The position numbers and the translations under genes are program-made. Of a stretch of 64,000 bases of DNA, positions 2 through 47,179 are shown one piece after another; positions within the stretch are counted from its first letter, which is position 1, and the number at the start of each line of letters is the position of its first letter. The DNA lies in sequence record KY555145.1. One strand, written 5' to 3'. The notes under the pieces are model-generated. The model searched no databases, was not told where the DNA came from, and saw nothing but the letters and a program-made list of their open reading frames with translations.

Positions 2-1114
2 ACGGTCGTCCTGGCTGGTCTGCCGACCGCCGGAGCCCGCGTCCAGATCAGCGACGGCGTCAAGACGGTGCCCTTCCAGTTCGGCGGCTCGGCGGCTCAG
101 CCGACCGTGGTCGTCACCCTCGGCGCCGACGAGACGGAGACCGCCCAGAACCTCGCCGACGCGATCAACAAGCTGCGCGTGCGCAAGCAACTGGAAGTCG
201 GGGCCTCGGCCGCGACCGGCACCGTGACCCTGCGCAACCTGCTGGTCACCGGCGGCTCGATCATCGAGACCGTGGCCGACGCCAATGTCACCGTGACCAA
301 CTTCTCGGGCGGCGACGCCTCGCTGCGCGGCGTGTTCACGATCGAAGCGCTGACCGACGACAAGATCACCGTCAACCCCGCGCCCGCGACCCTGGCCAAC
401 ACGACGGCCAAGGTCAACATCAAGGGCTCGATGCTCCGCAACCCGTTCGACCCGGACGTGATCACGGCGCAGTCGTTCACCTTCGAGACCGGCTTCGAGG
501 ACGTCGACCAATACTACCTCGCCGACGGCATGCGGATCGGCACGATCGCGCTGAACATCGCCGCCAACTCGATCCTGACGGGCTCGTTCGGTCTGCAAGG
601 CCGCGCCTCGACCCGCCAGAACACCTCCAAGCTCGGCGAAGCGCCCTACACCGCGCTCCAGACGACCGCGACGCCCGTGGCCAACGCCACCGTCAACGTC
701 GGCAAGATCGCGATGAACGGCGAAGAACTGTCGACCGCCGTGCAGTCGATCGCCATCAACGGCACGAACAACCTGCGTGACCAGATGGCCGTGGGCTACA
801 AGTTCCCCGCCGGCATCGGCGCGGGCCGCATGGAAATCTCCGGCTCGCTGGTCGCCTACTTCGCCGACGGCAACCTGTGGGACAAGTTCATCAACCACGA
901 GACCGTCTCGGTGAGCTTCCCGCTGACCGACGTGCTGGGCAACCACTACGAGTTCACGATCCCGGCGGCGAACTTCTCGACCGACACCGTGAACCCGGCC
1001 GGCGGCAACCAGGACATCATGGAGAACCTGGAATACACCGCCAAGCGCGACCCGGTCACCGACTGCCAGTTCCAGATCGACCGCTACTCGTCGATCTTCG
1101 CGAACACGAACTAA
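2..1114 (+). CDS. Major tail tube protein (5'-truncated by window edge)
   Basis: Frame is open from base 2; C-terminal phage tail tube-like domain (Thr/Gly/Ala-rich beta protein ending NMEYTAKRDP-like motif); lies directly upstream of chaperone and tape-measure genes. Confidence 0.8.
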   Translation, partial: TVVLAGLPTAGARVQISDGVKTVPFQFGGSAAQPTVVVTLGADETETAQNLADAINKLRVRKQLEVGASAATGTVTLRNLLVTGGSIIETVADANVTVTNFSGGDASLRGVFTIEALTDDKITVNPAPATLANTTAKVNIKGSMLRNPFDPDVITAQSFTFETGFEDVDQYYLADGMRIGTIALNIAANSILTGSFGLQGRASTRQNTSKLGEAPYTALQTTATPVANATVNVGKIAMNGEELSTAVQSIAINGTNNLRDQMAVGYKFPAGIGAGRMEISGSLVAYFADGNLWDKFINHETVSVSFPLTDVLGNHYEFTIPAANFSTDTVNPAGGNQDIMENLEYTAKRDPVTDCQFQIDRYSSIFANTN

Positions 1115-1121
1115 GGGCTTA

Positions 1122-1145
1122 GTCACGATTCCCCCGAATCGTGAC
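1122..1145. repeat. Perfect 10-bp inverted repeat GTCACGATTC-N4-GAATCGTGAC
   Basis: Seen directly, just after the tail tube stop; each arm contains a GANTC site. Confidence 0.75.
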
Positions 1146-1206
1146 AGCCCCACCCGCTTCCCCCGATAGACCAAAGTCCCCAGGACAGAAGTCTCAGCGC
1201 TGAGCA

Positions 1207-1237
1207 GGGCCGCCCGGAAATCGGGGCCGGGCGGCCC
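1207..1237 (+). terminator. GC-rich 11-bp hairpin without U-tract (weak terminator or mRNA-stabilising stem)
   Basis: GGGCCGCCCGG pairs with CCGGGCGGCCC; no poly-T follows. Confidence 0.4.
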
Positions 1238-1264
1238 ACCCTCCCCGATACGGAATCCCCGAAC

Positions 1265-1693
1265 ATGACCGACAAGATCAAGATCGACATGCTGGACCTC
1301 TTCTCGACCGATCGCGAGTCGGAAGAAGCGGGCGTCTGGATTTACCTGGACGAGGCCGAGCAGACCGGTTTCAAGATTCGCGCCCTGGGCGCCAAGGCGG
1401 TCCTCGACCTGCGCGAGGAACTGACCAAGAAGTACCAGTCTCTGATCCGCGCGGGCGGCAAGCTCCCGGACGAGAAGGTCGAGGAAATCAACCTGAAGGT
1501 CATCGCCGGCGGCGTGCTGGCGGACTGGAAGGGTATCATCGTCGGCGGCGAGGAAATCCCCTACAGCGCCGAGGCGGCCTATACGGTCCTGAGCAACCCG
1601 AAGCTGGGCAAGATGTCCGCCTTCATCGCCCAGCACTCGATGGACGCCCAGAACTATCGCGACGACGCCCGTGAGGACGCCGCAAAAAACTAA
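1265..1693 (+). CDS. Tail assembly chaperone (lambda gpG-like)
   Basis: 142 aa, between tail tube and tape measure; ends GCA AAA AAC TAA with a slippery heptamer. Confidence 0.85.
   Translation: MTDKIKIDMLDLFSTDRESEEAGVWIYLDEAEQTGFKIRALGAKAVLDLREELTKKYQSLIRAGGKLPDEKVEEINLKVIAGGVLADWKGIIVGGEEIPYSAEAAYTVLSNPKLGKMSAFIAQHSMDAQNYRDDAREDAAKN
1684..1690 (+). other. Programmed -1 frameshift slippery site A AAA AAC
   Basis: X XXY YYZ heptamer in frame at the end of the chaperone ORF; the -1 frame is open from 1690 to 2160. Confidence 0.85.
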
Positions 1694-2160
1694 CGGCGGC
1701 TCTGGAGTTCACGCTCAGCCAGAAGCACGGGGGCAGTGGGCGCGTCAAGTCGGCGGCCCGCGCCCCCAATGCTGAATCGCCTGACGACTGGCTGGCGCGG
1801 ATCAAGGCTCAGAACTCCGCTCCTCCGCCGAGCGCGGACGACGAGTTCGACCTGAACGCAGAGCCGAAGGGGATTGAGCCCTATCCGGACCTCCTGTGGG
1901 TCTGGGACGGTTTCTGGCGCCTCTCGAACAAACGCCCCAACGGCATGTCCGGCCCGATGCGGATTCCGACCTCGGAGATCGAGGCCTTCACCCGCATCCG
2001 GCGCTGGGACTACGCCAAGAGCAACGAATTCCTGTTCTACGTCGACATGATGGACGAGGTCTACATGGCCCACGTCGCCAAGGTCCTCGAAGAGCAGGAG
2101 CGCCAGCGAGAAACCGCCGCCAACAAGCCCCCGATCCACAATAAGCGGGGCCGCCGATAG
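1690..2160 (+). CDS. Frameshift extension of tail chaperone (gpT-like; G-T fusion is 1265..2160)
   Basis: -1 frame reads LTAALEFTLSQKH...WDGFWRLSNKRPNGMSGPMRIPTSEIEAF..., the same frame as the listed ORF 1945..2160. Confidence 0.8.
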   Translation, partial: LTAALEFTLSQKHGGSGRVKSAARAPNAESPDDWLARIKAQNSAPPPSADDEFDLNAEPKGIEPYPDLLWVWDGFWRLSNKRPNGMSGPMRIPTSEIEAFTRIRRWDYAKSNEFLFYVDMMDEVYMAHVAKVLEEQERQRETAANKPPIHNKRGRR

Positions 2161-2165
2161 GATCA

Positions 2166-5100
2166 ATGGACAGCGAAGCCCTCAAGCTTAAGATCGATTC
2201 CTCGCAAGCGCGTACCGACCTGGACGCGCTTGCGAAGTCCCTCGACCGCGCGTCCAAGGCCGCCGGCTCCATGCAGTCGAACCTCGCCAAGGGGGTCGAC
2301 AAGTCCAACGAGGCCCTGTCGCGCGGGGCCAAGAACATCGAGAAGTTCGCCCGCGTCACGGCGGAACTCTCGAAGGTCAAGCTGTCCGGCGACCCGGCCA
2401 AGCAACTCACCGAATTCGCTAACGCCGTCTCGGCCGTGGCGCGCGCGCGCGAGATCAGCGCCGCCAAGCTCAATGGCCTGTCGAAGTTCGTCCAGGTCGG
2501 CGCGGCTATCTCCAAGCTGCGGTTCACCGGCGAGTCCTTCTCGGGCCTGCACGCCCTGACCCAGGCGATGGACGAGGCCGGCCGCGCCCGCGCCGTCAGC
2601 GCCGCCAAGCTCAAGTCGTTCGTCGACTACATGGAAGTCGCCGCGCGCGCCTCGCGCCTGCGCTTCTCCTCCCAGACCTCCGAAGCCCTGAAGTCCCTGG
2701 CCAGCGCCATGGACGCGGTCGCGCGCTCGCGCGTGGTCAGCCCTCAGAAGCTGGCGGCCTTCAAGGAACTCTTCGCCACCCTGGCCACCGCCAAGGGCGT
2801 GCCGAACGCCGGCGCGATCGCCCGCGACCTCGACACCATCGCCGGGGCCGCCTCGCGCGCCGCCAAGGCCATGGCGGAACTCAAGGGCGCGCGCTCGGGC
2901 ATGGGCTCGATGCGCGCCTCGGGCGGCTCCGGAGGCGGCGGAGGCATCGCTTCGGGCGCGTCCTCCAACGTCAAGCGCTTCAACGAGGAAGTCGCCAAGG
3001 TCAAGGGCCATACCGACAACGCCGCCAAGGGCGTCGACGGCCTGGGCAAGGGCCTGGGTTTCCTGACCGGCCGCTTCAACCTGTCTTATCAGGCGGGTAC
3101 GCTGTTCTCGGCGCTGTTCTCGTCCTTCACCTTCGGCCAACTGGTCAAGGGCATCTACGACACCACGGTCTCGTTCCAGAAGCTGAACAAGGCCATGCTG
3201 TTCGTCACCGGCACCTATGCCGGCGCGCACAAGGCGACCCAGGACTTCATCGACATCTCGGTGCAACTGGGCGCGTCCGTCGAAGACAACGCCGACGCCT
3301 ATTCGCGCTTCGCCATCTCGTCGGCCGCCGCCGGCCTGAAGCTGAACGACGTCAACAAAATCTACCGGTCCACCCAACTTGCCCTGACCGCCGTCGGCGC
3401 CAACAGCGAGCAGGTCGGCTATGCCTTCTACGGCCTGTCGCAGGCCATGGCGAAGGGCAAGATTTCGTCCGAAGAATTCAACCGTCAGATCGGCGAGCAA
3501 ATCCCCGGCAACGCCCAGGCGGGCGCGCGCGCCCTGTCCAAGCTGACCGGGCAGCAGAAGTCGGTCGCCGACCTCTTTGACGAGATGCGCAAGGGCACGC
3601 TCCAGTCCGCGCCGTTCCTGAAGGCCTGGGCCGACGAGATCAACCGCATGTTCGCCCCGCTGCTGCCGGAGGCCGAAAAGCGTCCTGACTTCCAACTGGG
3701 CAAGCTGAAGACCGCCTTCTCCCTCTGGAAGGCGGAAGTGGGCCGGTCGCAGTTCATCGGCGCCCTGACCACCCAGTTCAAGAAGCTCTCGGACATGTTG
3801 ATCGTGGTCGACGGGGATCACCAAGTCCTGACCGAGCGCGGGCGCAAGCTTGCCGAGTCGTTCGGCAAGGGACTGGCCCAGGCCGTCAACATCCTCGGCA
3901 ACGCCCTGGCGTGGCTGGCGGACAACCTCGACAAGGTCGTCGCCGTGATCAAGGTGGTTGGCGCCCTGGCGATCGGCAACGAGTTCGCCAAGTGGGGCCG
4001 GCAGGTCGCGGCCTTCGCCGACAACATGCTGGGCGTCAAGCGGGCGATCGAGGAAGTCTCGGCCGCCGAGACCGCCGCCTCGGGCAAGCGCGCGGTGACC
4101 TCCAAGGCCGGGGCGGTCAACGCCGTCTCGACCGTGGCGTCCGATCGCATGGCGATGGCGACCAACCGCACCCGTAACGCGGTGATGGGCGGCACCTTCG
4201 TCGCCAATGCGGTGGCTCCGGCCGTGCGTCAGTCGCCGCAGTTCTCGCAACTCTCCTACCTGACCGGCAACCCGACCTCGCCCACGCGGGGCGCGCCGAC
4301 GTTCGGCCGTCGCCAGCCCTATACCGGCACCATGACCTTCGACGCGCGCCCGACGGGCCGGGCCGGCGGCATGGGCGGCCTGTTCGCCGCCATGGGCTCG
4401 GGCGCGGCGACCGCCGCCACCGGAGCCTTCACGGGCCTGCGCAAGGCGCTCAACGTCCTGCCCGGCGTCGCCCTGGCGGGGGCCGTGGCCCTGGCGATCT
4501 TCGGCAACAGCATCACCAAGCTGAACGACAAGGCCGTCTCGTACAACAACATCGCCGCCGGCGCCCTGGGCACGGTGGGCGACGAGATCGGCAACGGCAT
4601 GACCGGGCTGATCAACGGCATCCGGGGCCTGTTCGGCGCCGAGCAGAAGGCCCAGGGCACCGGCGACTGGCTGGTGGACCTCTCGGCGACGTTGATCGTC
4701 TTCGGTAAGGCCATCTTCACCCTGGCGACCACGCTCGGTAAAATCCTCGGCACGCTGATGGCCAATGTCATCATCCCGTGGATCGAATTGGGTCAGAAGC
4801 TGGCGTCGGGCGATCTGAAGGGCGCGGCGGCCAAGTCCGGTGAAATCCTCATGGGTCAACTGGGCAAGGGTAACCGCGAGCGCTGGGCCGAACTGGGCAA
4901 GGAACTGGGCAAGGACTGGGGCAAGGCCCTGGACTACGCGGGCACGCGCCAGTCGATCGTCAACGGCGCCCTGAAGTCGGCGGCCGGCGACAGCGCCACC
5001 CCGCAGGGTGCCTCCGACAAATTGACCGAGGCGGCCCTGGCGCAGATGAAGGCCGCCGACCAGCAGGCCCTCGCCGCCGCCGACCTGAAGGACGCCACGG

Positions 5101-8051
5101 CGAACTTCAAGAAGGACCTGGAGCCGCTCAACTTCAACGACCTCTTCAAGCGCGCCTCGGCCCTGGCTGATGGCAGCTTCGCACGCACCGCCGCCGCGTC
5201 CAAGCCGGGCGGCGTGATGGCGTCGCCGGCCGTGGCGACCCAACAGACCGCCGCCACCATCAAGACCGTCATGGCCTCGATGGGCGATCGCGTGTACGCG
5301 ACGGCTGGTCAGCACCTCGGACAGACCGAGGCCAAGGATGCGGCGTCGCTGCAAGCCTACTTCAAGGCCAACGGCGTCACCATCGACCCCAAGAAGCTCT
5401 CCTGGTGCGCGGCCTTCGTCAACGCGGTCCTGGCCCAGAACGGGCTCTCGGGCTCGGGCTCGCTGGCGGCTTCGTCCTTCAAGGACTATGGCGACGAGGT
5501 CTCGCGCACTGACGCCCGCAAGGGCGACATCGTCGTCCTCAAGCCCCAGGCGGCGGGCGCCACCGGTCACGTCGGCTTCCTCGACGGCTTTGACCGTCAC
5601 GGCAACGTGCGCGTCCTGGGCGGCAACCAAGGCGCGGCCGGCGGCGGCGGCGTCAACGTCTCGACCTTCGCCTCCAATCAGGTCGTCTCCTTCCGTCGCA
5701 CGGGCAGCGGCGGGGCCTCCAACTTCCAGGGCGGCGGCATCACCGAGGCCCAGGGCGAAGAAGGCGGTTCGCTGTACGAACGTCGGATGAATATGGTCAA
5801 GGCGCTTGGCACGATCACGGGCCAAGCCTCGCCTGCTGCCGACGCCATTTCTGAGTATCAATCGTCTCTCGAAAAGCTCCGTGACGTCCTGGTGTTCGAA
5901 GAAGGACTGGCTAAGAAGGTGGGTCCGGAGTTCCAGTCCATCTTCAACGCCAAGGTCCTGGAAGAGACGGTCGCCGCCCAGAAGAAGTGGAACCGCTCGA
6001 TCGTCGAGGCGCTCAACCCGATCGCCAAGGAATCCCGGACCCTGGCCGAGGCCAACGACGTCCTGCAACTGCGCGCCAAGGGCCTGTCGCAGGAAGCCGA
6101 CTGGCAAGAGCGCCTGACCGAACTGCGCAACTCCGGCATCAATGTCGACCTGATGCAGGACGAGGCCAAGTGGACCCAGTACCTGAACGAGTTGAAGAAG
6201 CAGGGCCTGGAGATCGACGTCAAGGCCCTGCAACTGAAGCCGGACGAACTGCGCTACCAGCAGGGCCGCGCCGAGGCGCTCCAGGCTGAACTCGACCTGA
6301 CCAAGGCGCTGAACGACGCCAAGCTGGCGGGCATCGCCCGCACCGGTTCCAGCTATGACCGCACCCTGTCGGGCCTCGTCGCCGGCAAGGGCCGCGACGG
6401 CGAGACGCTCGACCAGACCCGTCAGCGTCTGGCGGGCTCGGTCGGCAGCGACGGCCGCAGCGCGCTGGAAGCCCTGCAAGAGCAGGCCGGCGTGATGGAA
6501 GGCTCGCGCATGGCCGACGTCAAGGCCAGCATGCAGTCGCAGCTTGAGATCATGCGCGAGAGCGCGCGCCTCAACAACACCCAGCGCGGCATCTACGACG
6601 ACTACCGCAATATCCTGGGCGAACTGCTGAACAAGCAGGGCGCCTCGCTGAAGGAATTGCTGGACTCGGCCGACGAGGAGACCAAGCGTCTCGCCCAGTC
6701 GTTCGTCCGCGCCAAGGCGGACTTCGAAAACCCGCCCGGCTTCCAGAAGTGGGCCGACTCCCTGGAGCCGCTGGACAAGCGCCTCCAGGACATCAAGGCC
6801 AACTTCCTCGACAACTTCTCCGGCGGCATCACCGATGCGCTGCTGGGTGAGAAGGTCGACTGGAAGGCGATGCTGCACGATACCTTCAAGCAGATGCTGC
6901 GCGCCCAGGTCGATGAGGGTCTGAAGAGCCTCACCTACAAGCTGCTCGGCCAAGGTGGCGACCAGGGCGCGGCCCAAACCCCCGAAGCCCAGGCGCTAGT
7001 CTCGGCGGCCGATGTCCAATTGCAAGCCGGCAACAGCCTGCAACAAGCCGCCGCCAGCCTGATGCAGGCGGCTCAGACCACCGCGACCGCCGGCGCGGGC
7101 GGCGGCCTGGGCGTGATGACGGGCGGACCCGCGATGGGCGGCCTGGGCGGTCTCCTGGGCGGTGGCGGCGCCATGGGTGGCGGTGGCGGCCTCGGCGCGC
7201 TCGCCGGCGTCCTGGGCGGCGGCGATGGCACGGCGACCAACCCCTTCTCGATCGCCGACTCGATCCTCTCGCCGCTGGTCGTCGACCAAACGGGCGGACC
7301 GGGCTTCCAGGCGGCGGGCGCGGCGCTCCAGGGGCTGAACATCACCCCGCCGGGTGGCGGCGGCTTCCTGTCGGGCCTGGGCTCGATGTTCCAAGGCGGC
7401 CTGGGCTCGATGCTGCAAGGCGCCCTGAGCTTCGCCGGTCCGCTGCTGGGCGGCCTGCTGACGGGCGGCAAGAAGAGCCCCAAGACGCCGGCGAGCTACC
7501 GCATGCCGGGCGGCGTCATCGGTCAGGCGAGCACCAACAGCGTCTCGGGCCGCGTGGTTGGCCCCAAGCAAAACCTGATCGGCTCTCTGGCGAACCTGGG
7601 CTTCCAGTTGTTCGCGGGCGGCATGGGCGGCGGCGGCGGCCTGATGAGCATGTTCGGCATGGGCGGCGCTGGCGGCGCGGGAAGCTTCATTGGCTTCAAG
7701 GAAGGCGGCCTGACGGGCGCGCCGGTCAACCGTTATACCGTCTCCTCGCTGGGCTCGATGTTCGCCAACGCTCCGCACTATGCCGAGGGCACCAGCAACA
7801 CCAAGCTGGCCAATGGCGGCATGCCGGCGATCGTCCACCCGGACGAGGCGGTGATCCCGCTGTCGCGTGGCCGCAACGTCCCGGTGGAACTGAAGGGCGC
7901 CGGCGGCGGAAGCTCGACCACCGTGGTCTCGCCGATCACCGTCTACGCCAACGACGTCGACAGCTTCCGCCCGGCCCAGGCGCAGATCGCCCGCAAGCAG
8001 AACCGCACCCTGCGCCGCGCGGCCTTGCGCAACGCCTCGATGGTCAACTAG
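2166..8051 (+). CDS. Tail tape measure protein with internal CHAP/NlpC-like domain
   Basis: 1961 aa Ala-rich helical protein; tape-measure block (GKISSEEFNRQIGEQIPG), lambda-type C-terminal region (HPDEAVIPL), internal WCAAFV...GHVGF...LGGNQ motif. Confidence 0.95.
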   Translation: MDSEALKLKIDSSQARTDLDALAKSLDRASKAAGSMQSNLAKGVDKSNEALSRGAKNIEKFARVTAELSKVKLSGDPAKQLTEFANAVSAVARAREISAAKLNGLSKFVQVGAAISKLRFTGESFSGLHALTQAMDEAGRARAVSAAKLKSFVDYMEVAARASRLRFSSQTSEALKSLASAMDAVARSRVVSPQKLAAFKELFATLATAKGVPNAGAIARDLDTIAGAASRAAKAMAELKGARSGMGSMRASGGSGGGGGIASGASSNVKRFNEEVAKVKGHTDNAAKGVDGLGKGLGFLTGRFNLSYQAGTLFSALFSSFTFGQLVKGIYDTTVSFQKLNKAMLFVTGTYAGAHKATQDFIDISVQLGASVEDNADAYSRFAISSAAAGLKLNDVNKIYRSTQLALTAVGANSEQVGYAFYGLSQAMAKGKISSEEFNRQIGEQIPGNAQAGARALSKLTGQQKSVADLFDEMRKGTLQSAPFLKAWADEINRMFAPLLPEAEKRPDFQLGKLKTAFSLWKAEVGRSQFIGALTTQFKKLSDMLIVVDGDHQVLTERGRKLAESFGKGLAQAVNILGNALAWLADNLDKVVAVIKVVGALAIGNEFAKWGRQVAAFADNMLGVKRAIEEVSAAETAASGKRAVTSKAGAVNAVSTVASDRMAMATNRTRNAVMGGTFVANAVAPAVRQSPQFSQLSYLTGNPTSPTRGAPTFGRRQPYTGTMTFDARPTGRAGGMGGLFAAMGSGAATAATGAFTGLRKALNVLPGVALAGAVALAIFGNSITKLNDKAVSYNNIAAGALGTVGDEIGNGMTGLINGIRGLFGAEQKAQGTGDWLVDLSATLIVFGKAIFTLATTLGKILGTLMANVIIPWIELGQKLASGDLKGAAAKSGEILMGQLGKGNRERWAELGKELGKDWGKALDYAGTRQSIVNGALKSAAGDSATPQGASDKLTEAALAQMKAADQQALAAADLKDATANFKKDLEPLNFNDLFKRASALADGSFARTAAASKPGGVMASPAVATQQTAATIKTVMASMGDRVYATAGQHLGQTEAKDAASLQAYFKANGVTIDPKKLSWCAAFVNAVLAQNGLSGSGSLAASSFKDYGDEVSRTDARKGDIVVLKPQAAGATGHVGFLDGFDRHGNVRVLGGNQGAAGGGGVNVSTFASNQVVSFRRTGSGGASNFQGGGITEAQGEEGGSLYERRMNMVKALGTITGQASPAADAISEYQSSLEKLRDVLVFEEGLAKKVGPEFQSIFNAKVLEETVAAQKKWNRSIVEALNPIAKESRTLAEANDVLQLRAKGLSQEADWQERLTELRNSGINVDLMQDEAKWTQYLNELKKQGLEIDVKALQLKPDELRYQQGRAEALQAELDLTKALNDAKLAGIARTGSSYDRTLSGLVAGKGRDGETLDQTRQRLAGSVGSDGRSALEALQEQAGVMEGSRMADVKASMQSQLEIMRESARLNNTQRGIYDDYRNILGELLNKQGASLKELLDSADEETKRLAQSFVRAKADFENPPGFQKWADSLEPLDKRLQDIKANFLDNFSGGITDALLGEKVDWKAMLHDTFKQMLRAQVDEGLKSLTYKLLGQGGDQGAAQTPEAQALVSAADVQLQAGNSLQQAAASLMQAAQTTATAGAGGGLGVMTGGPAMGGLGGLLGGGGAMGGGGGLGALAGVLGGGDGTATNPFSIADSILSPLVVDQTGGPGFQAAGAALQGLNITPPGGGGFLSGLGSMFQGGLGSMLQGALSFAGPLLGGLLTGGKKSPKTPASYRMPGGVIGQASTNSVSGRVVGPKQNLIGSLANLGFQLFAGGMGGGGGLMSMFGMGGAGGAGSFIGFKEGGLTGAPVNRYTVSSLGSMFANAPHYAEGTSNTKLANGGMPAIVHPDEAVIPLSRGRNVPVELKGAGGGSSTTVVSPITVYANDVDSFRPAQAQIARKQNRTLRRAALRNASMVN

Positions 8052-42955: not shown

Positions 42956-43646
42956 AGAGCAACTCCGGTTTGGCGCTGACCGGCTTGGACCAATCCCAGA
43001 CGTACCAAGCATAGGCGAAGCGCGGGGCGCCCTTGGTGCCGGCGATCCAGCGAGGGCGGTGGCGAAGGGTGACCTTCGCGGTGAAGGCGGGGTGATCGAA
43101 CAGGTCCTTGCGCGAGCGCGCGGCGTCCCATTCGTGGCGGCAGAGGAAGGCGACGAGGCCCTGATCGGCCTCCATCAGCGACAGCGCGTGGCGCGCGGCG
43201 CGCTCGGCGTCCTTGCCGTAGGGCGGGTTGGTGATGATGGCGTCGGGACGCGGCGGCAGCGGCGTGGGCTTGCGCTCCTCGCCCTTCTCATCGACGATGG
43301 TTTCGGGCCGGGCCTTCAGCGCGCCCAGGCGGTCGAGGTCCGCCGGCGTCAGCTTGAAGAAGTCCTCCACCGCGTCCACCTCGAAACCCTCGTAGCGGTG
43401 GATGTCCGTGGAGAGGACCTCCTGCACGAAGGGCTTGAGCGGCGTGGCGATCGCGCCGTTGCCCGCGAAGGGCTCCCAGGCGAAGAACGGGGCGAAGTCG
43501 TCGCCCAGGGCCTCGATCAGGGCGTCGAAGGCCGGCCGAGGAGTCGGGTAAAAGTCCAGCGGGGTCCTGGCATATCCGGAGGCGCCCAGCATGGAGGGGT
43601 CTTTGCGACCAGCATCGGAGAGAGACATGGTCGTGAGGGATGTCAT
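42945..43646 (-). CDS. Small amino-methyltransferase (m6A/m4C type)
   Basis: DFYPTP, WEPFAGNGAI (motif I), IITNPPY (motif IV). Confidence 0.85.
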   Translation of the reverse strand: MTSLTTMSLSDAGRKDPSMLGASGYARTPLDFYPTPRPAFDALIEALGDDFAPFFAWEPFAGNGAIATPLKPFVQEVLSTDIHRYEGFEVDAVEDFFKLTPADLDRLGALKARPETIVDEKGEERKPTPLPPRPDAIITNPPYGKDAERAARHALSLMEADQGLVAFLCRHEWDAARSRKDLFDHPAFTAKVTLRHRPRWIAGTKGAPRFAYAWYVWDWSKPVSAKPELLYAG

Positions 43647-43660
43647 GGTTAACGAAGGGT

Positions 43661-43675
43661 GTCAAGATTCACGAC
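43661..43675 (-). promoter_or_regulatory. Phage promoter motif copy
   Basis: Exact GTCAAGATTCACGAC, back-to-back with the promoter of the large ncRNA. Confidence 0.65.
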
Positions 43676-43676
43676 A

Positions 43677-43705
43677 TTGACTGTCGTGAGCCACCACGCT
43701 AGACA
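43677..43705 (+). promoter_or_regulatory. Caulobacter sigma73-type promoter TTGACT-N15-GCTAGACA
   Basis: Matches TTGAC...GCTANAWC housekeeping consensus. Confidence 0.75.
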
Positions 43706-44368
43706 GGGGGCTACGGGCCGTCCTCCTGCGTTAGCCCCGCCGCCGCGCCTTCCAGGCGGCGAAGGTCGGGACGGAGCCGAAGGCGAGCCGGCCGAGGCAG
43801 CGGTTGGCGAGCAAAAGGAGAACCCGGCGAGCGGCGGAAGGCGAGTTCCTCGCCCTCGAACTCGGAAAGCACGTGGTGATGCCGGAACCACCGCGTTCGC
43901 GCGGACGTCTGGACGTTGCTAGGCGTAAGGCTGGCCTGCCGAGAAATGGAAACGGCCGGGGCGGGCGGGACTTGATCTCGTCCGCCTTTCCGCCTAAGCT
44001 TCCCTCATTGCAGGCGCAGCACCGCCCTTCGCTAACGGCCCCGAGGGGTACGCAAGGGCTAGAAGCCTTGCCTGGGACAGGACTGCCTCTGATCCAGGAA
44101 CGCCCTGGGCCGCGTAGCGCCCATGACGCGAACGCCGGCCGAGAATGGGCGACTAGGCGTGACGGCGGCCAGAGGCCGCAGCGACATTCCAAGCTCGATA
44201 GAGCGATCGGCGGGCCGGGGCGAAAGCCCTGTTTCGAGAGCCAGGGCAACCCGTCATAGGTCCTGGTCGGGCGACGAGGCAGCAAGTCCCGCGAACGGAG
44301 CCTCTGAGGTGGCGTCACCAAGATGCAGCAGACGCAAAAAGGCCCCGATCGCGAGATCGGGGCCTTTT
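43706..44368 (+). ncRNA. Unassigned ~630-nt large structured RNA candidate
   Basis: Own promoter and terminator, no credible ORF, many tetraloop hairpins, 10-bp long-range pairing 43874-43883 with 44311-44320. Confidence 0.7.
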
Positions 44369-44369
44369 C
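44336..44369. terminator. Bidirectional intrinsic terminator
   Basis: AAAAAGGCCCCGATC-GCGA-GATCGGGGCCTTTT. Confidence 0.9.
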
Positions 44370-44373
44370 ATGT

Positions 44374-44462
44374 TGGAGCTTCGGGAGGGACTCGAACCCT
44401 CATAGGTGTTCCCACCAGCAGAGATTTGCAATCCCGCGCCTAACCTCTCAGTCCACCGAAGC
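44374..44462 (-). tRNA. tRNA-Cys(GCA) with long variable arm
   Basis: Acceptor GCTTCGG/CCGAAGC, U73-CCA, anticodon loop TTGCAAA, T arm GAGGG-TTCGAGT-CCCTC, 18-nt variable region with GGTG-GGAA-CACC hairpin. Confidence 0.88.
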
Positions 44463-44645
44463 ACAAAAGGACCTCGACGCCCGAAGGCCCGAGGTCCGAT
44501 CCGTAACCAGGGGAGGGCCGTAGCTGTCCCCTGACCCTGAACGACAGGTGGCGGGCTTGGTCGTCATCCCGTCAGGCTCGCGGCGCCGCTCGCCTGAACC
44601 GCCGATATGCCACGAGGGCAGTGATCCGCAGGTCCCCACAAATAG

Positions 44646-44682
44646 CAAAAAGGCCACGATCCGCGAGGACCGTGGCCTTTTC
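44646..44682. terminator. Bidirectional intrinsic terminator (3' of GOLLD-like RNA)
   Basis: AAAAAGGCCACG...CGTGGCCTTTT. Confidence 0.85.
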
Positions 44683-44687
44683 GTTTT

Positions 44688-45560
44688 CCGACGGGCTGAG
44701 ACTACACCCATCAGCAATCCCGCTTCGAGGATTATTCCCCAGGTGCGACCCCAGGTATTCCCTCGACGTCCACCAGACCCCTTGCGGTAGTCCAGTCCGA
44801 GATCATCGCCGCCGTTCTTGCGCACCCCGAAGGGATTGCGGGTCTGGCGTTTGACCCATCATGGCGAACTACTCGACAGTTCCTTCCCCGCTGGGCTTGC
44901 GACCCACTCACCGGCGCTAACCGGCTGACGAAGCTCTTCCTATCGACACCTCGCGGGCTTGCGACCCTTGAGATGACTCCGTTACCCGAGGGCCGGAGCA
45001 TTTGGCGACTTACGTCCGCCACTGGACCAGTCTTTGCGTTTTTCATCGAAGCGGGGATTGAACCCGCGACCGACAGCTAGGACGGCTGTTGCACTACCAC
45101 TGTGCTATTCGCAAACCCACCAAGACGTGCTGGTCCAGTTGTTCCCAGAGCTTTTGACCCCAGAAATGCAACACGCCTCATATCTTTCGCCTTGCGGGCT
45201 ACTCGACTGCTCTTCAGGACCCCGTCTCCCCCGACCTTTCGGCCAGGATGCCCAGCACCCCTCGAACTGAAGCAAAGCTCTTCACCGCGAAGTGTCGAAC
45301 CCTGCAACCCAAACGGTTATCCGTACTCCCTAGACACGCTTGCACGGGATAGTCCGCTTGCGACGGACTGGCGGTTAAAGCCTCGGAGTTACCCCGGCCC
45401 CGCCTTGTCTCCCACGGTCTTCAGGTCTATCCCCTTTTGCAAGAGGCGGCCAGCTTCCCAGCCCGGACCCGTCGGCTTCCTCTGTCCTCTTGCGAGGTCG
45501 GGCGGCCTATGGGAGACCGTCCCTGTCACCCCGTCGCCGGGGCTTTCGTCAGAAGCGACG
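44688..45560 (-). ncRNA. GOLLD-like giant ornate RNA (~870 nt)
   Basis: On - strand: GAGTAGCCCGCAAGGCGAAAGATATGAGGCGTGTTGCATT...CAAAAG, a second GAGTAGTT, many GCAA/GAAA tetraloops and 3' GGGTGTAGTCTCAGCCC, all resembling recalled GOLLD consensus; flanked by promoter and terminator. Confidence 0.75.
45043..45114 (-). pseudogene. tRNA-like element embedded in GOLLD-like RNA
   Basis: Intact D arm (GCAC/GTGC), anticodon stem (ACAGC/GCTGT, loop CGTCCTA) and T arm (GCGGG-TTCAATC-CCCGC), but only a 4-bp acceptor stem and no CCA. Confidence 0.75.
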
Positions 45561-45565
45561 ATGAC

Positions 45566-45594
45566 GTTCTAGCGACAGCCCACGTCGTCGTCAA
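45566..45594 (-). promoter_or_regulatory. Sigma73-type promoter TTGACG-N15-GCTAGAAC for GOLLD-like RNA
   Basis: Near-perfect Caulobacter housekeeping consensus on - strand. Confidence 0.8.
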
Positions 45595-45650
45595 CGACTT
45601 TTTACATCCCGGCGCGGAATTTTTTCGACAGTCGTGGATGACGACAGTGC

Positions 45651-45679
45651 TTGACATTCTCGTAGACCCATGCTAGGTG
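45651..45679 (+). promoter_or_regulatory. Promoter TTGACA-N15-GCTAGGTG for tmRNA
   Basis: Divergent from the GOLLD promoter. Confidence 0.7.
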
Positions 45680-45681
45680 TC

Positions 45682-46058
45682 GAAAATCGTTGTAATTCGG
45701 ACAACGGAACTGGCGGCAAGACAGGGGTGCGAATCCCCTCGCCTCCACCATCGACGCCCGGCGCTGGGAGTACGCGACTCCTGGGCAGGGAGTGTTACCC
45801 TGGCGGGCTGCGGCCCGAGCCAAAGGTAGCCGGGCGTCGTTGATGGGGGCGACTAGCTTTCGATTGGCGCTCGGGACTGAAAGACGCAACGGTGGGTGAC
45901 CTCCACATCGGCTTGCCGGTGATCGGGTCAGGCAACAGTAAATGTCGCCGACAATGACAACGACGTCGTGGCTTTCGCCTCGGCTCGTGAAGCCATCGCC
46001 GCCTAATAAGCGGTAGAGGAGCCCGCCGGGAGCTTGGCAACAGAATCCCGGCAACCCC
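45682..46058 (+). ncRNA. ssrA: Circularly permuted two-piece tmRNA
   Basis: Acceptor piece ends AGGGG-TGCGAAT-CCCCT-CGCCTCC-A-CCA (45750); coding piece starts GGGGGCG (45845), giving a G3.U70 pair; resume context AACAGTAAATGTC-GCC; tag frame 45947-46006 encodes ADNDNDVVAFASAREAIAA-stop-stop; 3' GGCAACAGAA motif. Confidence 0.92.
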
Positions 46059-46187
46059 CTTTCGCAGGCGGGAACACCAACAGGCGATCTGTCGGGCGAC
46101 CGATTTCCGATCCGTGTTCCCGTCTTCGAAAGGTGGTCAGGCCTACCCTCTTGGTGTGCTATCCAAGGGTCTGGCCACTTTACAGAA

Positions 46188-46266
46188 CGCGGGGTAGAGG
46201 AGTCCGGTTGTCCTCGTCTGGCTCATAACCAGGAGATCGTGGGTTCAAATCCCACTCCCGCTCCCA
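46188..46266 (+). tRNA. tRNA-Met(CAT), initiator-like
   Basis: CGCGGGG acceptor with C1xU72 mismatch, loop CTCATAA, T arm GTGGG-TTCAAAT-CCCAC, CCA end. Confidence 0.88.
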
Positions 46267-46270
46267 ATGC

Positions 46271-46549
46271 GAACGCCGGCTGTTGAGAACGACGGCGTGA
46301 CAAGCTCGGAGAGAACGAGCACTCCAGTCCGGGGTATGAGGCCGGACTAGCGGACGCCGTAGCGATTGCAGGCGTGACACCCGGAGATAGCGGGACCGAT
46401 TTTCCAGGCTCCATGCCCGGCGCGTCGGGGGCGGACCGTTAATCCGCCCGGCGTCAGAGGATGAGGCTAGTTCTCGGCGATGAAGCTGCGCGCGCAGTGA
46501 GAAAGCCAGGGCATGGCGCTTGGAAAGTCGGTTCGCGGTTCGTCCGCTA
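46271..46549 (+). ncRNA. Structured spacer RNA: two tandem motif copies plus long rod-like stem
   Basis: GRACGCC...GGCGTGACA-hairpin twice; 23/24-bp stem 46395-46418 with 46509-46532; 9-bp stem 46348-46356 with 46541-46549. Confidence 0.55.
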
Positions 46550-46554
46550 CGAGA

Positions 46555-46628
46555 TGGAGATGTCGCCGGTTCGAGTCCGGCAGGTCCCCCAAAAGGAGGC
46601 CTTAGCTCAGTCGGTAGAGCGCTCCTAT
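46555..46628 (+). pseudogene. tRNA 3' half followed by tRNA 5' half (permuted order)
   Basis: 46555-46591 = anticodon-stem strand, variable loop, T arm GCCGG-TTCGAGT-CCGGC, acceptor AGGTCCC; 46596-46628 = GAGGCCT-TA-GCTC-AGTCGGTA-GAGC-G-CTCC. Confidence 0.6.
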
Positions 46629-46637
46629 CCCACCTTT

Positions 46638-46722
46638 GGTACGGTGGCTCGACAGGTAAGGCATCGGCCTCATAAGCCGAGGGTTCGTCCCAATCCTGGT
46701 TCAAATCCAGGTCGTACCTCCA
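46638..46722 (+). tRNA. tRNA(CAT), Met or Ile2, with long variable arm
   Basis: Acceptor GGTACGG/TCGTACC, U73-CCA, TCGGC-CTCATAA-GCCGA, 14-nt variable region GGG-TTCGT-CCC-AAT, T arm CCTGG-TTCAAAT-CCAGG. Confidence 0.88.
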
Positions 46723-46795
46723 ATCGACGCTTGACCCCAGGCCGCAGGCTGCTAAGCTTCCCCGGTCGGGATCGTCCCGCGTCCTTTCCAAGGTC

Positions 46796-46828
46796 AAGCC
46801 CCCGGAGCCTCGCTTCGGGGGCTTTTCA
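46796..46828. terminator. Intrinsic terminator closing the RNA island
   Basis: AAGCCCCCGGAG...CTTCGGGGGCTTTT. Confidence 0.85.
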
Positions 46829-47179
46829 GTTCTCGACCACCCGCAGGCGCCGGGCTTCGTTGGCGCGCTCCTCCGCCGCCACGCGCGAGACGTCTTGCAG
46901 ATGCGCCTTGGCGATCAGGTCGGGTGCGCCCACGGCCCGGAAGGGCACCTTGACGGAGAGGTCGACATAGCGCCGCAAGAGCGGCTCGAACTCCAGCCCT
47001 CGCGCCTGGGCGATCCGCGACAAGGCGCCGGCGACGATCGCCACGACCAGGACGTTGGTCGGTGTCTCCTTGGTCAGGGTCCAGATGCCCGGTATCGATT
47101 GTCCAGGATGAAGCTCCTGCCGCGACACGTCGTCGGCGGCGGCGCGGAAGAGGTTCTCGTAAGGGACGTTTTCGAGCAT
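46826..47179 (-). CDS. Hypothetical protein
   Basis: Likely start MLENVPYE at 47179; codon usage becomes phage-like only from there. Confidence 0.65.
   Translation of the reverse strand: MLENVPYENLFRAAADDVSRQELHPGQSIPGIWTLTKETPTNVLVVAIVAGALSRIAQARGLEFEPLLRRYVDLSVKVPFRAVGAPDLIAKAHLQDVSRVAAEERANEARRLRVVEN

Follow-up and report, generated by a model that had tools for sequence, protein, structure and literature searches.

GOLLD RNA (RF02032) is phage-borne, hundreds of nucleotides long, rich in hairpins and found among tRNAs; ROOL RNA (RF03087) belongs to a similar size class and occurs in a comparable phage or tRNA-adjacent context. The bacterial Y RNAs (YrlA, RF02553, and YrlB), associated with the protein Ro60/Rsr, are several different small RNAs with one short module in common, and the species 1 and 2 RNAs of phage T4 are stable untranslated RNAs beside the phage tRNAs, presumably matured by the tRNA-processing machinery of the host. 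Here, we describe an RNA locus at positions 43706–44368 (+ strand) of a 64,000-nt stretch of sequence record KY555145.1 (“the window”, i.e., the whole of the DNA analysed). Caulobacter phages Ccr10, Ccr2 and Ccr29 match the region at 100% identity, and phiCbK, Swift, Magneto and Karma (Shapirovirus, Dolichocephalovirinae) at 94–98%. We consider it probable that this is a modular locus for stable phage RNA, made up of three small structured modules instead of one giant GOLLD- or ROOL-like fold, and that its units share a new “handle” motif of about 60 nt.

Positions 43300–47000 were compared with Rfam 15 (cmscan, at gathering thresholds and at E ≤ 10), and no family matched in 43706–44368, with GOLLD, ROOL, OLE and raiA among the models. 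This agrees with an earlier note on this DNA, made from the letters alone, which had proposed an unassigned non-coding RNA locus in a tRNA-rich island. Sub-gathering signals comprised a terminator-like partial match to ncS011 (44336–44368), asX2 (17.0 bits, 44257–44365) and PhotoRC-I (17 bits, − strand). The likeness to GOLLD is one of phage context, length, abundance of hairpins and company of tRNAs. A true GOLLD copy lies about 300 nt from the locus in the same island, on the opposite strand, beyond tRNA-Cys and terminators. The RNA locus, by contrast, goes unmatched by the GOLLD model at E ≤ 10 (membership mark, 150 bits), has a modular build and an internal promoter, and does not extend beyond one phage subfamily; it also occurs in Rogue-type phages, in whose fetched locus GOLLD was not seen. 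Because of the opposite strand and the latter phages, the RNA locus is independent of GOLLD. From ROOL, it differs by the lack of a model match at E ≤ 10 and of any sign of a single conserved global fold.

With Y RNAs, the locus shares the principle of several different small RNAs built around one short common module, the vicinity of tRNA-like elements and, in Brevundimonas jumbo phages, a position beside Ro60; a short core resembling GNCGAAN0-1G may be a further point in common. However, no YrlA or tRNA match was found inside 43706–44368 (YrlA mark, 69 bits), and T- or D-arm domains are absent; the motif stands at the 3′ end of the unit, whereas the Y RNA module lies in the 5′/3′ terminal stem; and the window phage has no Ro60, while other Ro60 loci have no motif. 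No sequence relation exists with the T4 species 1 and 2 RNAs, and, unlike these, the units described here have promoters of their own and a common covarying motif, a motif that avoids the main tRNA cluster. In the literature searched, including the phiCbK genome paper (Gill et al. 2012), no description of the locus was found. We would place it, as a new family or variant, among the phage stable structured RNAs beside tRNAs, where the combination of the common motif with an expandable array of units sets it apart.

The motif consists, in outline, of GCGAAC, a helix (helix P1), UGAC and a hairpin (hairpin P2). The canonical copy and the further copies or motif-like elements recognised in the island are the following:

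44121–44187, + strand: canonical motif; YUGAnGCGA, helix P1 (ACGCC 44132–44136 with GGCGU 44156–44160), GAC, hairpin P2 (44165–44170 with 44174–44179, loop AGA)
46262–46325, + strand: second motif copy, immediately 3′ of the tRNA-fMet CCA end; 50.3 bits
46341–46401, + strand: third, weaker motif copy; 13.6 bits
45504–45554, − strand: weak motif-like element within ~60 nt of where the GOLLD transcript presumably begins; CUGACGAAAGCCCC..GGGGUGAC and a hairpin; 13.9 bits

A covariance model of the motif was built from 24 copies; it finds 28 copies in 11 sources, at 38–82 bits, and the canonical copy scores 73.7 bits (covariance model R1; E of about 1e-18 to 1e-19). Helix P1 is nearly invariant, with two compensated variants (two covarying pairs), and hairpin P2 has four covarying pairs, G–U pairs included. 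The covariation exceeds that of 500 out of 500 shuffles and of every slid register. The strand of the motif is fixed by the G–U pairs and by its co-orientation with tRNA-Cys, transfer-messenger RNA (tmRNA) and tRNA-Met in phages Colossus and PW and in the metagenomic contig L020. The GA dinucleotides that flank helix P1 on both strands could form tandem G·A pairs. A simple k-turn or k-junction fits the tandem GA flank, but a consistent C-stem was not found, which leaves this as a structural remark only. The motif has no counterpart in Rfam at E ≤ 10.

When the region was compared by blastn with distant genera (Colossus, PW and eight Brevundimonas phages), the sole stretch recovered was 44121–44187. 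There are one to seven motif copies per phage (three in Colossus, four in PW, three or four in Kabachok), mostly 220–260 nt apart. They stand at the ends of units, often followed directly by a TTGAC-N17-TAnnnn promoter of the next unit, and 3–6 nt 5′ of tRNA-Cys or tRNA-Met; the placement after tRNA-fMet is repeated in Rogue, BL10 and BL57. The motif-like element in the GOLLD leader is nearly identical in BL57, hence it offers no covariation to judge by. The bodies of the units share only the motif, with no paralogy between them. The motif is confined to the island with tRNA-Cys, tmRNA, tRNA-Met and, in some phages, GOLLD, and was not found in the other 57 kb scanned of Ccr10, which include the main cluster of 22 tightly packed tRNAs. 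Because that cluster lacks the motif, a general tRNA-processing signal was rejected.

Pattern scans of genomes and metagenomes returned 119 loci, nearly all of them chance matches of 20–30 bits; the real ones are L050 (64.7 bits) and the IMG/VR contig L020. On the evidence of these scans, the motif is essentially absent from bacterial genomes and metagenomes, two phage-like contigs excepted. Contig L020 (IMGVR_UViG_3300033068_001629) carries, within positions 800–7100, an apparently non-coding array of about 4 kb with six or seven motif copies, followed by tRNA-Cys, tmRNA, tRNA-fMet and tRNA-Met, all on one strand; it is the largest version of the island that we have seen. A GAGGCAGCG hairpin that PW and L020 both contain was put down to chance matches.

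The signals that delimit the locus are as follows:

43669–43705, + strand: promoter P1; −35 TTGACT (43677–43682), 15-nt spacer, −10 GCTAGACA (43698–43705)
43972–43999, + strand: internal promoter P2; TTGATC-N16-CTAAGC
44337–44368, both directions: bidirectional intrinsic terminator; A-tract, 10-bp GC stem (44341–44364), GCGA loop, U-tract (UUUU)
14214, 29343, 43677, 43972, 45594, 45651, 55648 and 63814: TTGAY-N17-CTA sites in the window

The block GGTTAACGAAGGGTGTCAAGATTCACGACATTGACTGTCGTGA of promoter P1 is unchanged in nine phages from three lineages, although identity in the RNA body is only ~65% among them; across the same nine, the −10 region is nearly identical. The −35 box is bracketed by a perfect 8-bp palindrome, TCACGACA/TGTCGTGA (43669–43676 and 43682–43689), identical in the nine phages and likely an operator. 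A GANTC methylation site (43667–43671) adjoins the palindrome, as does a divergent TTGACA on the − strand (43665–43660) for the methylase operon. The class of promoter P1 matches the sigma-73 consensus of Caulobacter, TTGACGS-N10-14-GCTANAWC. In the window, eight TTGAY-N17-CTA sites occur versus 0.65 expected (none of 100 shuffles reached eight), and half of them fall in the 2-kb RNA island: before the RNA locus, inside it, before the tmRNA and facing GOLLD. At promoter P2, the distance from TTGAT to CTA is exactly 17 nt in the CbK, Rogue and BL57 lineages, and the −10/start context, CTAAGCTTCCC, recurs at 46748–46758. The terminator is shared with the convergent tRNA-Cys (44374–44462, − strand); its stem is conserved and its loop variable among relatives. 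The earlier note had credited the locus with its own promoter and terminator, and the sequence features do describe a unit that runs from a sigma-70-type (Caulobacter sigma-73-like) promoter to a canonical intrinsic terminator with a GC stem; judged by their conservation, both signals are real.

Consensus structure was predicted with RNAalifold on nine sequences representing the three lineages (CbK, Rogue and BL57). The consensus contains 152 pairs, 41–44 of them with compensatory changes (44 versus 30.8 ± 4.9 in column-shuffled alignments), and its minimum free energy (MFE) of −171.8 compares with −105.8 ± 6.4 in column shuffles (z = −10.4). For modules 1, 2 and 3 taken separately, the consensus z against column shuffles was −5.5, −3.2 and −5.6 on the + strand and weaker on the − strand (reverse complement: −3.0, −2.7 and −2.4). 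The stronger consensus structure on the + strand and the orientation of the promoters place the RNA on that strand. The supported helices are local, and are distributed over the modules as follows:

43706–43999, + strand: module 1, the lineage-restricted 5′ part; hairpins 43788–43807 and 43872–43895
43933–43986, + strand: degenerate motif copy ending module 1; GGCC, loop UGCCGAGAAAUGGAAAC, GGCC, then a covarying hairpin with a TTGAT loop
44003–44187, + strand: module 2, the conserved core RNA; GCGCAGCAC (44014–44022), GCUnGAAGCC, GGACUGC (44080–44086), motif at the 3′ end
44188–44336, + strand: module 3; hairpins GCUC-GAUA-GAGC (44193–44204), GGGGC-GAAA-GCCCU (44217–44230), CCAGG/CCUGG (44241–44245 with 44262–44266) and GGUG-GCGU-CACC (44308–44319), then an invariant GCGUC...CCAAGAU...GACGC

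Module 1 aligns only with the Rogue group, at ~63% identity; in Bajun, Kabachok, PW and L020, nothing recognisably equivalent was seen. In its hairpin 43788–43807, the stem covaries, while the loop, AGGCAG, is invariant. In the degenerate motif copy, GCCGAGA and CTTGA do not vary across the three lineages, and two columns of the hairpin are compensatory; the homologous Rogue site (L002, 3012–3072) reaches 18.6 bits with the motif model, but the window site only 4.3 bits, for which reason the latter is assigned as motif by alignment. The order of blocks in module 2 is common to the CbK, Rogue and BL57 lineages, CcrPW, the Brevundimonas phages Kabachok and Marchewka, and contig L020. The distance from GCGCAGCAC to the motif is 116–156 nt (202 nt in the variant copy of Bajun), and the middle of the cross-genus alignment is too poorly aligned for covariation. 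Subfamily-wide conservation extends over only ~190 nt, chiefly the ~60-nt element 44121–44187. Exactly at the boundary of modules 2 and 3, the Rogue group has an insertion of 17 nt and BL57 one of 56 nt. In module 3, the loop of hairpin 44217–44230 stays GNRA (GAAA in the window phage, GCGA in relatives), and the pair 44310–44317 is U–A, G–C or C–G across the three lineages. The terminal GCGUC...CCAAGAU...GACGC resembles helix P1 of the motif fused to the terminator; being invariant, it provides no covariation to judge by.

In GenBank, a − strand open reading frame (ORF) at 43731–44321 is annotated, in several records, as the hypothetical protein gp126c of 196 amino acids. That the region encodes this protein is extremely improbable, even though the frame is open: open frames of this length are expected at ~70% GC, CbK, Swift and Karma have 1-nt frameshifting indels in it although these relatives are 96–98% identical, and stops occur in Swift, the Rogue group and BL57. 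Most of the indels (14–15 of 16–17) are not multiples of three, and the annotated ORF varies in length or is missing among relatives. The + strand ORF 43804–44259, for which the earlier note had recommended a check for conserved coding, is broken by frameshifts and stops in every relative. Neither ORF has a match in Pfam, and a protein-coding reading was rejected for both. Since neither frame survives in relatives, comparison of the sequences shows that 43706–44368 is a non-coding locus wrongly annotated as a protein gene, and that the annotation should change.

The following model would accommodate these data. Host RNA polymerase would start at promoters P1 (near 43706) and P2 (near 44003) and stop at the terminator (44341–44368), which predicts nested transcripts of ~660 and ~365 nt. 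The RNA would be a chain of three independently folding, hairpin-rich modules with no global fold, each ending in a version of the motif: degenerate in the first, canonical in the second, and fused to the terminator in the third. The motif is the unit of conservation, common to otherwise different RNA units of ~200–260 nt that come in arrays of one to seven in related phages. It is probably a binding or end-defining site: a trans-acting protein factor, possibly a nuclease or chaperone, may recognise it as a shared handle and would set or shield the ends of each unit, or build the unit into a ribonucleoprotein (RNP). Functions specific to a unit would reside in its variable body.

Several observations weigh against this model. 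Only three independent lineages span the full region, and the covariation statistics are modest. The −35 box of promoter P2 falls within an RNA hairpin loop (TTGAT), so that one of the two proposed roles may be wrong. Folded as single sequences, modules 1 and 2, and module 3 without the terminator, score an MFE z of ~0 on either strand; control coding segments behave alike, and no more is to be expected at ~70% GC. No RNA-processing gene was found among the neighbourhood genes of the locus in the window phage. There is also an invariant 5-bp complementarity between the AGGCAG loop (43795–43800) and CUGCC (44083–44087), which could be a real contact between modules and would then argue for a larger fold.

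Such a fold was the claim of the earlier note, which saw in the locus one ornate RNA of ~630 nt, comparable to GOLLD and ROOL and a candidate for an undescribed class of large RNAs. All the sequence items it quoted are present at the positions it gave, namely the first-stem strands GGGGCTA (43707–43713) and TAGCCCC (43732–43738), the arms of a 10-bp long-range duplex (TGGTGATGCC 43874–43883 and GGCGTCACCA 44311–44320), and CTGCCTC (44083) with two alternative partners GAGGCAG (43794 and 44276). The long-range duplex did not hold: a duplex of at least 10 bp occurs in 92.5% of dinucleotide shuffles, i.e., at chance level, and six of its 10 pairs are broken in the Rogue and BL57 lineages. Each arm instead forms a local hairpin that is kept through different sequences, the first changing from GUGGUG/CACCGC to CAGGAG/CUCCUU and the second from GGUG/CACC to GGGA/UCCC and GGCG/CGCC in relatives. 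The first stem exists but survives in the nearest relatives alone (66.7% of cells paired). Of the two GAGGCAG copies, the one at 43794 forms the conserved loop of a hairpin that covaries, and the one at 44276 is not conserved. Many local hairpins do covary, such as the GNRA-capped 44217–44230, but overall “ornateness” is not above chance, the MFE z of the whole region (−2.46) being accounted for by the terminator alone. In DNA of ~70% GC, chance yields ornate stems and long-range duplexes of 10 bp, and only comparative evidence separates structure from noise.

We hold it to be unlikely that the locus makes one ornate RNA of ~630–660 nt whose parts all fold together, in the manner of GOLLD or ROOL, and which may form higher-order assemblies. 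There is only one strong terminator, so that transcripts from promoter P1 should cover the whole region; RNAalifold proposes some long-range helices; neither the AGGCAG loop nor CUGCC varies across three lineages; and the context, adjacent to phage tRNAs, is as for GOLLD and ROOL. Yet no long-range pair shows covariation, a second conserved promoter lies inside the supposed unit (43972), the insertions of 17–56 nt fall at a module boundary, the 5′ third lacks a recognisable counterpart in distant relatives (Bajun, Kabachok, PW and L020), leaving only the ~190-nt core and the ~60-nt motif subfamily-wide, the GOLLD and ROOL models are unmatched at E ≤ 10 and the MFE z is ~0. The interpretation in the earlier note is partly supported: an unassigned non-coding RNA locus with its own promoter and terminator stands, a single ornate RNA of the GOLLD/ROOL class lacks support, and the claim of a large ornate RNA class shrinks to a modular locus that carries a novel motif of ~60 nt. 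Nor do the data point to an element that acts as DNA, be it a replication origin, an operator array or a recombination site. A repeated conserved element in a non-coding part of the DNA-replication module and the perfect palindrome at promoter P1 would suit such a role, but compensatory changes keep the helices, G–U pairs occur on one strand only, the + strand has the stronger consensus structure, motif copies abut tRNAs and point the same way as these, and the layout from promoter to terminator fits transcription; we rate a DNA-level element as highly improbable.

As to what the motif does, it is doubtful, though worth stating, that it constitutes a new functional module, either the handle of an RNP analogous to the Y RNAs but independent of phage Ro60, or a catalytic or processing element, which would organise an expandable array of phage small RNAs and also flank tRNA-Cys, tRNA-Met, tRNA-fMet and the GOLLD leader. 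The motif might also be a self-cleaving ribozyme of a new kind, or the site of a dedicated nuclease, at which the island transcripts are cut into units; this would be in line with its punctuation-like placement (between units and 0–6 nt from tRNA ends) and with its compact two-helix core and invariant purine-rich joining strands. Such a role is nevertheless improbable: the hammerhead, hepatitis delta virus (HDV)-like, twister, pistol and hatchet models are unmatched at E ≤ 10, the densely packed main tRNA cluster lacks the motif, and many units have their own promoters, so that cutting is not required. A hammerhead reading of CUGAnG..GAA was rejected, as CUGA is not kept in the copies after tRNA-fMet, stem II is absent between CUGAnGA and GAA, and a G follows the would-be stem III; an HDV-like fold was rejected on inspection, there being no P2 strand for the double pseudoknot. 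The motif may self-cleave, but such activity is unsupported. The units may alternatively be Y-RNA-like partners of Ro60 (Rsr), with the GCGAACG core of the motif as the Ro60-binding element. For bacterial Y RNAs, a GNCGAAN0-1G element has been put forward as what Rsr recognises (PMC4201824), and the most conserved letters of the motif, (G/C)GCGAACG, resemble it. The core reads CGCGAACG in the window and GGCGAACG in copies of Rogue, Bajun, Kabachok (third copy) and L020 (fourth copy); this core is short, and its place is on the 5′ side of helix P1 instead of within a terminal stem. Ro60/Rsr genes are present in Brevundimonas jumbo phages, CcrColossus and CcrPW, with orthologues (TROVE and vWA domains) at the following places:

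L007, 584–1969: Ro60/Rsr orthologue
L143, 630–2000: Ro60/Rsr orthologue
L148 (Colossus), 3001–4410: Ro60/Rsr orthologue

In Brevundimonas jumbo phages, the gene stands directly upstream of the motif array; the encoding phages Colossus, PW and Kabachok have three or four canonical copies versus one in the array of phages without Ro60; and sub-threshold YrlA-like, tRNA-like elements exist in the same island. Against this, no TROVE homologue was found in the window or in any phiCbK-, Rogue- or BL57-type genome, and Bajun lacks the gene as well, yet all these phages keep the motif. In Colossus, the gene is 24 kb from the array with no motif copy beside it, and the closest Ro60 loci of Xanthomonas and Ralstonia phages likewise lack the motif (three further Ro60 loci were tested, none with the motif). 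The units have neither T- and D-arm domains nor a YrlA-model match, and a 7-nt resemblance can be chance. We regard a Ro60 partnership as quite unlikely, less so than a ribozyme or nuclease site, and retain the modular locus with a shared handle motif as the probable reading.

YrlA-like elements were noted as well. In the window, a sub-threshold match (46557–46624, + strand; 29.7 bits against a gathering threshold of 69) comprises a T-arm, then a D-arm, immediately upstream of tRNA-Met. Other YrlA-like matches lie at L004 3786–3898 and at L143 8–77 and 465–563; fuller ones flank the Ro60 gene of phage Gurke, where one is annotated as “tRNA-Ser”.

PhiCbK is a classic model phage, yet the second RNA island of its genome is unannotated and the RNA locus in it is mislabelled as a protein. 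The motif, a compact element supported by covariation, offers a tractable entry to the role of phage stable RNAs, GOLLD included, in infection: there is a single motif to mutate or to pull down, and the host is genetically easy.

The non-coding stretch is set in the DNA-replication module, between the methylase/A1-like operon and an SNF2 helicase. Upstream of 43706–44368 lies that − strand operon (T5 A1-like protein and DNA methylase), and downstream the RNA-gene cluster, which is the second RNA island of the phage. The island holds tRNA-Cys, GOLLD with an embedded tRNA-Gly, a permuted tmRNA, tRNA-fMet, the Y-RNA-like element and tRNA-Met, and features of it in the window are:

44374–44462, − strand: tRNA-Cys, convergent with the RNA locus
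44683–44646, − strand: GOLLD terminator
44693–45179, − strand: GOLLD (RF02032), found with the covariance model at 165 bits; without GenBank annotation
45042–45115, inside GOLLD: tRNA-Gly(UCC)
45594–45570, − strand: likely GOLLD promoter, TTGACG-N17-CTA
45658–46097, + strand: permuted tmRNA of the two-piece type, tag peptide VADNDNDVVAFASAREAIAA; without annotation in the Ccr10 record
46188–46266, + strand: tRNA-fMet, with its CCA end abutting a motif copy

GOLLD is present in the phiCbK group and BL57, and was not found at the fetched loci of Rogue, Colossus, PW, Bajun and Kabachok. Downstream of tRNA-Met, a miniature unit (46727–46825, + strand) consists of TTGACC-N16-CTAAGCTTCCCC and, about 40 nt later, an intrinsic terminator (46800–46825); it is a candidate small RNA of ~60 nt.

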